Sequence record: NC_062582.1
Reading direction: 5' to 3' (one strand)
Length of the DNA stretch: 64,000 bases
Below the pieces are notes generated by a model. It was not told the DNA's origin. It did no database searches and saw nothing but the letters and a program-made list of their open reading frames with translations. Positions 48,673 through 51,145 of this stretch are shown piece after piece (within the stretch, counting starts at the first letter, position 1; each line of letters begins with the position of its first letter). A program made the translations under genes and the position numbers.

Positions 48673-49320
48673 TTAACCTACCCGTACTACGATGGTATCG
48701 TTATTGAAAGTTTCACCAACCCAACGGTTGAATGTATGATCTGTAATACCCTGATAATTCAGTGTAAAAGAAGCGTCGTCTACAAGAATGTATTTGATAG
48801 TCGATGCCGGTGTATCGATATATTTATCCCAAAGGTCATCCGTATTTCTGATTACATCACCTTTGTTATGGAGTACCACTGGATATAAAGAACCATTCTC
48901 ATGCACCGCGACTTTTAATGTCCCATCTTCATTACGATCATAAATTGTTTCTTCATAGGTCTCTACTTGACGATCTTTGATGATCTGATTAAGTATGCCT
49001 GAATTCATGTAGTGTCTCGGTAAGATAGCATTTGTACGCTTCACAAACTTCTCACCGATCACTTTCTCGATAGCTCGATCCTTACAGATGAACAATACTT
49101 CATCAACTCCGTGCTGTAATGCAAAATCTACAAGAGCATCGGTTTTACCACATTGTCTACCAACATAGAAACCAACCGTACGGTATTCCCGAACATCCGC
49201 ATGGGGTGGGTTTCGTGCATGGAGTCGATGTATCCAGTTCTCTTTTGTCTTGTCAATAAGAGCTTCGATGATTGAAGTATAAGCTACTTGAATTTTTGCT
49301 GGTGTAATAAAGTGATTCAT
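48673..49320 (-). CDS. stand-alone P-loop NTPase-like protein (terminase/helicase-type Walker motifs)
   Basis: VGFYVGRQCGKT and YILVDDA. Confidence 0.55.
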   Translation of the reverse strand: MNHFITPAKIQVAYTSIIEALIDKTKENWIHRLHARNPPHADVREYRTVGFYVGRQCGKTDALVDFALQHGVDEVLFICKDRAIEKVIGEKFVKRTNAILPRHYMNSGILNQIIKDRQVETYEETIYDRNEDGTLKVAVHENGSLYPVVLHNKGDVIRNTDDLWDKYIDTPASTIKYILVDDASFTLNYQGITDHTFNRWVGETFNNDTIVVRVG

Positions 49321-49389: not shown

Positions 49390-49417
49390 CGGCATAAAGC
49401 TCTCCTTGCGGAGAGCA
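49390..49417 (-). terminator. terminator downstream of the tRNA pair
   Basis: Reverse complement GCTCTCC-GCAA-GGAGAGC-TTTATGCCG. Confidence 0.8.
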
Positions 49418-49608: not shown

Positions 49609-49614
49609 GAATGT

Positions 49615-50210
49615 GTCCAGCTCGTGAGATTGACGCCTCACTATAATTGTAGATCGCCGCTGGCGAAGCTTTTCATCCCTAAGTAAAGCCTACCCTGACG
49701 GCAACCATTTGGTCGCTAGAGGGAAAACCTTTTCATAGGGTCTATCTACCTTACTTACCTCTACATGGCTTCAGTACGATGGAGGGCAAGTAAATTGAAT
49801 TCGAGAGTAATCCACTTAAATACTTGGCAAACACATGCTCTTGTTAACCTGCATGCTGCTATCTAAGTCATTACTGTGGTCACGTGTATGGTCCGTGCGT
49901 ACCGCCTTTCGGCGCGTGCTCTTTAGAATGGTTGGTAGCAGGTACGGGACTATCACCTTCGTGGTTTACCTTTCCAGGTAATTCCCTGCTTCCGGTCGTA
50001 CACCTGGTACGAACAGCCCTTCTTCTCGCTTCAGGGAATGGCGTGACCTTTACAGAGCTATCCGTTTCAGCCATTTCTTCATAGGGGTGGGTCGCGGTTC
50101 CCTCGTCCATAGAGCTATAGCTCGATCTACAAATGTCTAAGGGTTGAGTAGGCACACCTATTTGACCACAGGTTAGTGGGTGCCTTTTGCTACACGGGAA
50201 GGTTAGTTCT
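49615..50210 (-). ncRNA. candidate large structured ncRNA (~595 nt) containing a 23S rRNA H18-H20-like module
   Basis: No credible ORF/RBS; many perfect hairpins; 10-bp long-range helix (50123-50132 with 49647-49656); directly upstream of tRNAs on the same strand. Confidence 0.75.
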
Positions 50211-50233
50211 CGTATACTATTACTATCTCAGTA

Positions 50234-50410
50234 CTATTTAACTGAATTACCGAACTGATCTTGGCTAAACCTTTTCAACATAGCTTCACGTACAGGACTT
50301 GGAATGTAACCTTCCAGTGGAATACACTCATCTGGTGGTGTTGGATGAGTCAGTGATTCGTCTACCCAACGTTCCGACAGTTTAACTAAGGCTTCTTTGA
50401 TCTCGCTCAT
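50234..50410 (-). CDS. hypothetical protein (58 aa, MSEIKEALVKLSERW..., not in track)
   Basis: Read manually; ATGA overlap with the upstream ORF. Confidence 0.55.
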   Translation of the reverse strand: MSEIKEALVKLSERWVDESLTHPTPPDECIPLEGYIPSPVREAMLKRFSQDQFGNSVK

Positions 50411-50683: not shown

Positions 50684-51145
50684 TTAAGATGCGAGGATAA
50701 CAAATGTATCGATACCAAAGTTATTAGCAACCCATTTGTAAAATGTCTTCTTCTTGCATCGACCATAGGTAAAAGCGGAGTCAGCATCTTCAAGGATGAT
50801 GTACTTGTAGCGTTTGGAACAAATTGCAAATTCCATTGGGATGGTGTGGATACGACGTGGGCCTTCAATAGTCAAATGACGCATGGCATTGTCTGGAATA
50901 TACCTCGACAGAAATGCATACGTATCATCATTCTTAGGAATAACCAACGTATCTGGATGACGCCTTACCCATTCTAAAATGAAAGCACTCTTACCCATGC
51001 CTCTACCGACGTGGAAACCTACTGACTGGTATTCACGGATAAGGTAATCAATTGGACGATCATAATCACCCGCGTCTTTGATATTTTGAACGACCACCGA
51101 TTTAGAATCGAGCATACTCTGAATAAAATCTACAAGTTTTGACAT
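50684..51145 (-). CDS. stand-alone P-loop NTPase-like protein, paralog of 48673..49320
   Basis: REYQSVGFHVGRGMGKS and YIILEDA. Confidence 0.55.
   Translation of the reverse strand: MSKLVDFIQSMLDSKSVVVQNIKDAGDYDRPIDYLIREYQSVGFHVGRGMGKSAFILEWVRRHPDTLVIPKNDDTYAFLSRYIPDNAMRHLTIEGPRRIHTIPMEFAICSKRYKYIILEDADSAFTYGRCKKKTFYKWVANNFGIDTFVILAS

Follow-up and report, generated by a model that had tools for sequence, protein, structure and literature searches.

A new family of large structured non-coding RNA in tRNA operons of Pseudomonas jumbo phages, with a junction resembling 23S rRNA H18–H20

What fills the long gap that precedes a leucine transfer RNA (tRNA) gene in a stretch of 64,000 nucleotides (nt) of sequence record NC_062582.1 (hereafter the window)? 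On the minus strand, 625 nt (49609-50233) lie between the stop codon of a 58-amino-acid (aa) open reading frame (ORF) and tRNA-Leu(UAA), and a preliminary description made from the sequence had proposed that they encode a large structured non-coding RNA (ncRNA). The interval is identical to positions 294766-295390 of Pseudomonas phage Phabio (MF042360), a 309-kb jumbo phage whose host is P. fluorescens SBW25. We conclude that the gap holds a member of a new family of large structured ncRNA, outside Rfam 15 and inside the tRNA operons of one Pseudomonas jumbo-phage clade, and we regard this point as settled. As to function, our best guess is that the RNA may be a tRNA-operon-derived scaffold or decoy for the host ribosomal proteins uL4 and uL24.

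A conserved, covarying RNA upstream of tRNA-Leu(UAA)

The first relative was an 80-nt blastn match in phage Psa21, within a gap of ~800 nt that likewise precedes tRNA-Leu. Searches by blastn and pattern scans of IMG/VR and metagenomes gave ten distinct homologous elements of 625-949 nt, Phabio included, each directly 5' of tRNA-Leu(UAA) (10/10). They come from the phages Phabio, Psa21, D6 and RVTF4 and from the contigs L087, L034 (identical in sequence to L205, L029 and L013), L204, L036/L012, L219 and L229. All belong to Pseudomonas jumbo phages or large viral contigs, six of them to genomes or contigs of ~300-310 kb. Immediately upstream lies tRNA-Trp or tRNA-Ser, as in several members, a polysaccharide-lyase gene or, in Phabio, a small ORF. 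The shortest and most divergent element is that of Phabio; its identity to the other members is 61-75% over the 3' domain and 47-55% over the central one.

To count covarying pairs, all members were realigned with two covariance models, R1 for the 3' domain and R2 for the central domain, each of which matches the window once (161 and 119 bits, respectively). In the six helices of the 3' domain, pairing holds in 93.3% of cells and compensatory changes occur at 16 of the 36 pairs, against a shuffle mean of 7.2; none of 500 shuffles reached 16, and slid partners gave 5 at most. The eight helices and the loop-loop contact of the central domain pair in 88.8% of cells, with compensatory changes in 29/43 pairs (shuffle mean 16.9; 0/500 shuffles reaching 29; slid partners at most 13). 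Covariation in syntenic relatives is therefore strong in two separately modelled domains, and four helices named in the preliminary description (TCGTAC/GTACGA, TTACTTGCC/GGTAAGTAA, GCGACC/GGTTGC and GTGAG/CTCAC) are the forms that covarying helices take in Phabio. The family fold comprises at least 15 helices. Because G-U pairs are conserved at several positions (UG:8, GU:9, UG:7 and GU:8 of 10 sequences), we place the RNA on the minus strand, like the tRNAs. The minimum free energy z-score against shuffles, -2.1 on the minus strand versus -0.85 on the plus strand, is weak taken alone; the comparative evidence is decisive.

The gap had been described as free of any credible ORF with a ribosome-binding site. 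It contains one sizeable ORF, of 91 codons from GTG (50155-49880) or 76 from ATG, and GenBank places a hypothetical coding sequence of 76 aa, PHABIO_450, inside it. A protein-coding gene, or the decaying remnant of one, would explain this open frame and its annotation. However, a search by tblastn for the Phabio ORF in nine homologous loci gave marginal short matches only, and the ORF is kept in none of them; the longest ORFs of the family members vary in place and strand. Indels across the member alignments are frequent and not multiples of three, and the substitutions in helices are compensatory. We consider a coding origin scarcely credible. The non-coding character of the gap thus stands, as no conserved protein ORF was found in the nine relatives, with the correction that a coding sequence had been annotated there; PHABIO_450 should become an ncRNA feature.

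The element belongs to no known RNA family in Rfam 15. At the gathering score and at E<=10, the window yielded tRNAs only and nothing in the element, and five relatives searched at E<=1-5 gave no match except tRNAs. At those cut-offs the models for GOLLD (RF01998), ROOL (RF03087), RNase P RNA and tmRNA matched neither the window nor the five relatives (tmRNA was also sought in the window with ARAGORN), and the models for group I (RF00028) and group II introns and for small ribozymes gave no match at E<=5-10. We found no paper describing this RNA in a literature search. Synteny, covariation and the lack of a conserved ORF bear out the large structured ncRNA beside tRNAs that had been proposed, and the Rfam comparison, covering GOLLD, ROOL, tmRNA, RNase P and introns, leaves it without a known family. 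A separate idea, that the word AAGUCC...GGGCA pointed to RNase P, was abandoned: there is no model match, and the word is missing in Phabio, Psa21 and L204.

As far as searched, the family is confined to one clade of ~300-kb Pseudomonas jumbo phages. The PHIKZ297-family gene of phiKZ and PhiPA3 is flanked by tRNA regions that contain no comparable gap and no match to R1 or R2. The suggestion of a new class in phiKZ-like phages therefore holds in that the family is new, but not as a general statement about these phages. Large ornate RNAs of bacteria and phages (GOLLD, ROOL, OLE, raiA) are rare and their functions mostly unknown, and each new class has repaid structural study. To our knowledge, this would be the first such class in the nucleus-forming Pseudomonas jumbo phages, a heavily studied group in which we know of no large ncRNA described.

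Architecture, transcription unit and a junction like 23S H18–H20

A structured gap upstream of tRNA-Leu is confirmed where the preliminary description had located it, and all the helices that it listed are present in the sequence. Its most informative feature was nevertheless missing from that inventory: a three-way junction resembling H18, H19 and H20 of 23S ribosomal RNA (rRNA). The RNA consists of a 5' region that varies, a central domain in which two loops make a covarying contact, and an almost invariant 3' domain. The order from 5' to 3' is optional modules (in relatives only), H-A, Pj/H1, Pk/H2, Pf, Pg, the junction, a linker and the 3' domain. Its parts in the window are as follows.

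49609..50207, minus strand: large structured non-coding RNA (family of ten, matches to R1 and R2, covariation); the 5' end is predicted from the position of the promoter-like motif and the 3' end from RNase P cleavage at the 5' end of tRNA-Leu
50150..50185, minus strand: 5' hairpin AGGCAC/GTGCCT (50185-50180 with 50155-50150), enclosing a CCAC-TAACC-TGTGG hairpin
50100..50143, minus strand: Pj (CCCT...GAGGG) and H1 (TTGTAGA...TCTATGG), start of the central domain (R2 position 1 is 50143)
50044..50073, minus strand: Pk/H2 hairpin TGGC...ACGG-ATAGCT-CTGT...GTCA, with the loop ATAGCT at 50061-50056
50017..50036, minus strand: Pf hairpin CCCT-GAAGCGAGAAGA-AGGG, with a conserved 12-nt loop (GAAGCGNGAURA-like)
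49996..50012, minus strand: Pg hairpin TCGTAC-CAGGT-GTACGA, corresponding to ACGGA/UCCGU in relatives
49937..49990, minus strand: three-way junction like 23S H18/H19/H20 (R2 match to E. coli 23S)
49801..49936, minus strand: variable linker, about 0-260 nt across members and also very different in sequence
49915-49902, minus strand: GNRA hairpin GCGCC-GAAA-GGCG(G), in the linker and not alignable between members
49855-49851 with 49838-49834, minus strand: CATGC/GCATG, in the linker and not alignable between members
49617..49800, minus strand: conserved 3' domain (R1)
49793-49751, minus strand: Pa, with stem TTACTTGCC (49793-49785) and GGTAAGTAA (49759-49751) and the invariant 24-nt loop CUCCAUCGUACUGAAGC
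49750-49741, minus strand: GGTAGATAGA (segment also written GUAGAUAGACC), between Pa and Pb
49740-49677, minus strand: Pb, enclosing Pc and Pd (R1)
49716-49701, minus strand: GCGACC-AAAT-GGTTGC hairpin, a version of a covarying helix
Between Pb and Pe, minus strand: ATGAAAAGC (segment also written AUGAAAAGC), in the 3' domain
49663-49659 with 49621-49617, minus strand: Pe, CCAGC with GCTGG, closing the 3' domain
49656-49649, minus strand: CGATCTAC (motif also written GGCGAUCUAC), invariant and enclosed by Pe
49641-49624, minus strand: Py hairpin, GTGAG/CTCAC (49641-49637 with 49628-49624), enclosed by Pe

The junction came to light through a scan for the conserved word GAAGGTGAHAGYCCYGT, which led to two small contigs, L298 and L269. 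R2 scores 39 and 37 bits on them, at model positions 148-220 and 161-212. Since these contigs looked like domain I of large-subunit (LSU) rRNA, E. coli rrlH was searched. R2 positions 158-215 match E. coli 23S nt 290-348 with 26.5 bits (E 1e-8 in 3 kb), the next match reaching 5.5 bits; in a search of 840 kb, made up of unrelated viral DNA and the rrn operon, the 23S match was the sole one above 8 bits (E 2.8e-6). E. coli 23S nt 286-353 can be aligned to seven phage modules with hardly a gap, and 17 columns are invariant among the phage modules, E. coli 23S and the two LSU-like fragments. The junction is present in 7/10 members (Phabio, D6, RVTF4, L204, L036, L219 and L229).

In Phabio, Pi (AGCAGG/CCTGCT) corresponds to H18, Ph (TTACCT-GGAA-AGGTAA) to H19 and GG-TGATAGT-CC to H20; the strands that join them read GAA, ACCACGAA and CGTA. 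The likeness extends to the helix register, to the GGAA loop on H19 (6 bp in both Phabio and E. coli), to the junction lengths, bar a strand between H19 and H20 that is 1 nt shorter than in 23S in Phabio and D6, and to the near-identical nucleotides of the junction and the H20 loop (GAA / CCAYAGAA / GGUGAUAGYCC / CGUA). The phage module differs in sitting within an ncRNA and in its shorter H18 (6-9 bp). Its junction strands are conserved and its helices covary, with 79% of cells pairing and compensatory changes in 13/17 pairs. At the model level, the rest of the RNA showed no similarity to 23S, 16S or 5S.

Two further candidates were rejected. A second rRNA-like module was suggested by a blastn-short match of M1, the larger optional 5' module (present in relatives only), to the 23S GTPase-associated centre (nt 1045-1112), for which R1, R2 and R3, a model built from M1, gave nothing significant. 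Blastn-short matches of Pf and the 3' domain to 23S nt 1514-1531 and 1279-1300 were equally unsupported by the three models.

The contigs L298 (1-74) and L269 (about 200-345) carry their LSU-like part, which by eye resembles domain I including H18-H20, at the start of IMG/VR contigs of 3.2 and 2.1 kb, followed by coding-looking sequence. An Rfam LSU match was absent at E<=0.001; the two may be chimeric assemblies or something else.

The remainder of the central domain includes a covarying contact between the loops of H1 and H2. These pair as GACUA:UAGUC in six members and GAUCA:UGAUC in three (97.8% of cells pair), and two adjacent pairs switch jointly from CG/UA to UA/CG. In Phabio the H1 loop holds AGCTAT (50122-50117) and the loop pair is AGCUAU:AUAGCU, taken from the sequence, as R2 misaligned the Phabio H2. 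H1 itself shows compensatory changes in 6/7 pairs among the relatives. The Pf stem covaries (CCGA/UCGG, CCACC/GGUGG, CCCU/AGGG; 97.4% of cells pair), and Pg pairs in 100% of cells with two compensatory pairs. Upstream, the relatives have a long helix, H-A, that covaries by eye (D6 GAUCACAUUGGUGU/ACACUGGUGUGAUC; RVTF4 UCGUUAGCGAUG/CAUGCUAACGA). The Phabio 5' hairpin, placed in the same way relative to CCCT(T)AGAC, may be a reduced form of H-A. R3 found nothing in Phabio.

The 3' domain is kept in all members, including those without the junction, and must therefore carry the core function. Pe encloses one or two hairpins across the family and ends 8-20 nt before the tRNA; in Phabio the distance is 8 nt, rather than the roughly 15 nt given before. 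The preliminary description had also closed a domain of ~485 nt with a 10-bp helix between TTGTAGATCG (50132-50123, in the Pj/H1 segment) and CGATCTACAA (49656-49647). The perfect match exists, and one as good to CGATCTACAA turned up in 0.08% of cases when the upstream 570 nt were shuffled, but a closing role is not established. The 3' strand of this helix, the most conserved word in the family, also pairs locally with GUAGAU (49749-49744), and the sole compensatory event found for the motif (RVTF4, AUAGAU with AUCUAU) favours this local partner. Whichever pairing forms, a pseudoknot is implied, because either crosses Pe. In the relatives, pairing of AAGGUCGCC in M1 with GGCGAUCU was considered as the closing helix and rejected; the M1 segment has a local compensatory partner (D6 GGUC/GAUC; Psa21 GGUU/AAUC), which makes the long-range helix doubtful there.

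The invariant Pa loop (49784-49776, minus strand) exposes CCCUCC, which resembles CCUCC, the anti-Shine-Dalgarno core at the 3' end of 16S rRNA. It could pair with GGAGG-type sequences, which we note as a lead only.

The RNA lies in a unit with two tRNAs, bounded by the following features.

50208..50239, minus strand: promoter-like bipartite motif AAATAGTACT-N7-TAATAGTATACGAGA, overlapping the stop codon of the 58-aa ORF
50234-50236, minus strand: stop codon of the 58-aa ORF (sequence and ORF list)
49608-49523, minus strand: tRNA-Leu(UAA) (ARAGORN and Rfam), co-oriented with the ncRNA and directly downstream of the gap
49517-49429, minus strand: tRNA-Ser(UGA) (ARAGORN and Rfam), after tRNA-Leu and co-oriented
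49399..49416, minus strand: terminator-like hairpin GCTCTCC-GCAA-GGAGAGC then TTTATGC (from the sequence), after tRNA-Ser and closing the unit
51358-51348, minus strand: variant motif TAAGAGTATAC, 18 nt before tRNA-Asn
L002 1315-1329, L088 2185-2199, L089 2304-2318, L205 1768-1782 and L229 1822-1836: TAATAGTATACGAGA sites in relatives (exact 15-mer)

The exact 15-mer TAATAGTATACGAGA, with AAAATACT-N7, precedes tRNA operons in Psa21, D6, RVTF4, L205, L204 (twice), L219 (twice) and L229; it marks the tRNA/ncRNA transcription units of these phages. Early promoters of jumbo phages carry AT-rich motifs of ~10 nt centred near -10 (PMC7598289), and by analogy the motif is probably the promoter of these units. 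The RNA would then start near 50205, shortly after TAATAGTATAC; the first ~25-30 nt of the gap belong to the promoter-like motif and not to the RNA. At the other end, a terminator had been placed at 49390: a hairpin does close the unit, but at 49416-49399, where a terminator scan flags it, though on the plus strand. An equivalent hairpin followed by TTTATG comes after the tRNAs in relatives. RNase P cleaves the 5' ends of tRNAs, and the ncRNA is likely co-transcribed with the tRNAs and matured by tRNA processing.

Possible functions of the RNA

In 23S rRNA, nt 281-359 (H18/H19/H20) fold into a Y-shaped three-way junction; uL4 and uL24, which have their primary site there, are the only two proteins with which it interacts specifically (PMC6426284). 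The first step of 50S assembly requires both (PMC2672003). A further partner of uL4 is RNase E, and the protein regulates the S10 operon through an RNA that resembles, and competes with, its 23S site (PMC10931766). Leaders of ribosomal-protein operons such as the E. coli S10 leader are likewise non-ribosomal RNAs that mimic an rRNA site and compete for the protein (PMC10931766). They are, however, short cis-acting mRNA leaders of host operons with a weak, structural resemblance to rRNA, whereas the phage module is a near-literal copy in a phage RNA beside tRNAs, not upstream of a ribosomal-protein gene. OLE RNA offers another parallel, as a large ornate bacterial ncRNA with a proposed pocket for a ribosomal protein (RpsU), but it shares neither sequence nor host (Firmicutes chromosomes) nor partners with the phage RNA, and its model has no match here.

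We propose the following course of events. The ncRNA would be transcribed together with tRNA-Leu and tRNA-Ser from the TAATAGTATACGAGA promoter-like motif; RNase P would make its 3' end and, in relatives with a tRNA directly upstream, the 3' processing of that tRNA would make its 5' end. The freed ncRNA may then accumulate as a stable RNA whose rRNA-like junction would bind host uL4 and/or uL24, the first proteins on 23S rRNA. Either these proteins would be titrated from the assembly of new host ribosomes, and uL4 also from partners such as RNase E, or they would serve the RNA as folding cofactors. The invariant 3' domain would carry a second core activity, because it is kept in members without the junction.

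Taken as a whole, the reading of a large ncRNA gene, tRNA-processed and with a junction that would bind host uL4/uL24, has in our view slightly better than an even chance of being right. Binding of uL4 and/or uL24 by the junction, as decoy or with the proteins as cofactors, is possible but falls somewhat short of an even chance when taken by itself. The most far-reaching version is a tentative one that we think rather improbable: a new ornate class of phage RNA in which a near-literal 23S site would capture uL4 and uL24 during infection, halting new ribosome assembly or redirecting uL4 activities (RNase E inhibition), with a further activity in the 3' domain. If true, the capture of early-assembly ribosomal proteins would be a new form of host takeover acting on ribosome biogenesis. 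The junction also provides a handle, as binding partners of giant phage RNAs can here be tested with two purified proteins and a 54-nt fragment.

Several points weigh against this reading. The junction is missing in L087, L034 and Psa21, which have other hairpins instead, and for that reason it cannot be the core function; it could be a captured piece of rRNA kept only as a rigid Y-shaped building block. Its likeness was measured against E. coli 23S and the two LSU-like fragments rather than the 23S of the Pseudomonas host. The covariance-model alignments were fitted to our own structures, the family is small (ten sequences, some of them close), so that the covariation statistics rest on few independent events, and the promoter assignment is based on analogy.

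The main rival explanation is an RNA-only architectural particle like those of ROOL and GOLLD, in which the RNA would form a homo-oligomer, H1 and H2 would kiss between molecules and the junction would be merely a rigid module. GOLLD and ROOL are RNAs of about 580 to over 800 nt, many-helix and pseudoknotted; in GOLLD, conservation is found in the 3' region, is lower in the 5' region and is lacking in the linker, and covariation reveals kissing loops; the ROOL kissing loop, first called tertiary from covariation, was proved intermolecular (10.1101/2024.12.08.627333). This family has all those features of size, helices, tRNA neighbours, layout and covarying loop contact. Both classes are encoded by phages or prophages, often beside tRNA genes, a habit that all ten members share in abutting tRNA-Leu(UAA). 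The kissing sequences here are moreover partly palindromic (UGAUCA, AGCUAUAGCU, CUAG), and the junction is dispensable in 3/10 members. Yet there is no detectable homology in sequence or structure to either class (Rfam models, E<=5-10), the hosts differ, being ~300-kb Pseudomonas jumbo phages, the association is with one tRNA, Leu-UAA, and the rRNA-like junction sets this family apart. That junction keeps single-stranded nucleotides identical to rRNA, beyond the need of a structural brace, and we consider the particle unlikely.

A cis-acting leader of the tRNA-Leu/tRNA-Ser unit, be it a platform for folding or processing or an attenuator, that sets the output of tRNA-Leu(UAA) and has no function in trans, would account for the strict link to tRNA-Leu(UAA), for a last helix 8-20 nt before the tRNA and for the position between promoter-like motif and tRNAs in Phabio. 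It is distinctly less likely again, given 600-950 nt and at least 15 conserved helices, far above the needs of known leaders, an intact RNA in Psa21 and D6 where the adjoining tRNA-Leu is broken and replaced, the expression of tRNA-Leu without this RNA by phiKZ and PhiPA3 and, in a scan of the minus strand, no terminator-like hairpin between RNA and tRNA. As catalysis is common among large, conserved RNAs that combine pseudoknots with invariant single-stranded segments, we also considered a ribozyme, either a self-splicing intron that is degenerate or stands alone, or a catalyst of tRNA processing. Relatives contain words like group I R/S (CAGACUA, GAUAGUCC), and an HNH endonuclease gene lies near the RNA in Psa21 and D6. 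Against this, the group I, group II, RNase P and small-ribozyme models had no match at E<=5-10, and no gene is interrupted, the flanks being a stop codon or complete tRNA upstream and a complete tRNA downstream. The 5' boundary varies among members, and GACUA/UAGUC joins two hairpin loops, which is not a P7 topology; the group I idea was accordingly rejected, and we think a ribozyme of any kind very improbable. We thus prefer the tRNA-processed ncRNA with a junction that may bind uL4/uL24.

Variation among relatives and neighbouring genes

In Psa21 (L002 3224-~3256) and D6 (L088 3140-~3176), the RNA is followed by a tRNA-Leu of which only the 5' half remains, with the acceptor, the D arm and some of the anticodon stem. 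Beyond this remnant lie a second tRNA-Leu(UAA), complete and different from the first, and the HNH endonuclease gene. It looks as if a cassette of tRNA plus HNH had inserted, in the manner of homing, into the original tRNA-Leu gene.

The L219 RNA is the longest in the family (949 nt) because it has two tandem diverged copies of M1, one Psa21-like and one D6-like (minus strand, about 6390-6150). The contigs L036 and L012 (IMGVR_UViG_3300042010_000058 and _000112), from one metagenome, both end within the RNA, and the ~30 nt in which they overlap differ at one position; that the assembly broke inside the RNA perhaps reflects strain variation there. The first ~26 nt of the L036 element (minus strand; AUACCUACUGGAAACGGUAG) form a 5' hairpin, 20 nt of which match E. 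coli 16S rRNA nt 149-168 at 95% identity (E 0.003 in a 5.3-kb search), and unrelated hairpins occupy this place in other members.

Further candidate members were discarded. Scans for the 15-mer ACTTGCCCTCCATCG and for the pattern TGAAAAG-N-GCGATCTA returned mostly chance matches. L207-L212 are chance matches, and the match in L206 (a metagenome-assembled genome of Ignavibacteriales) is a chance one inside a coding region.

The tRNA genes of the window are flanked by two small paralogous proteins of 215 aa (48673-49320, minus strand) and 153 aa (50684-51145, minus strand), which have in common the P-loop-like motif GxxGK(T/S). Homologues of the 215-aa protein, PHIKZ297 and PhiPA3 gp369 among them, occur in 56 records of Pseudomonas jumbo phages and again sit between tRNA genes.

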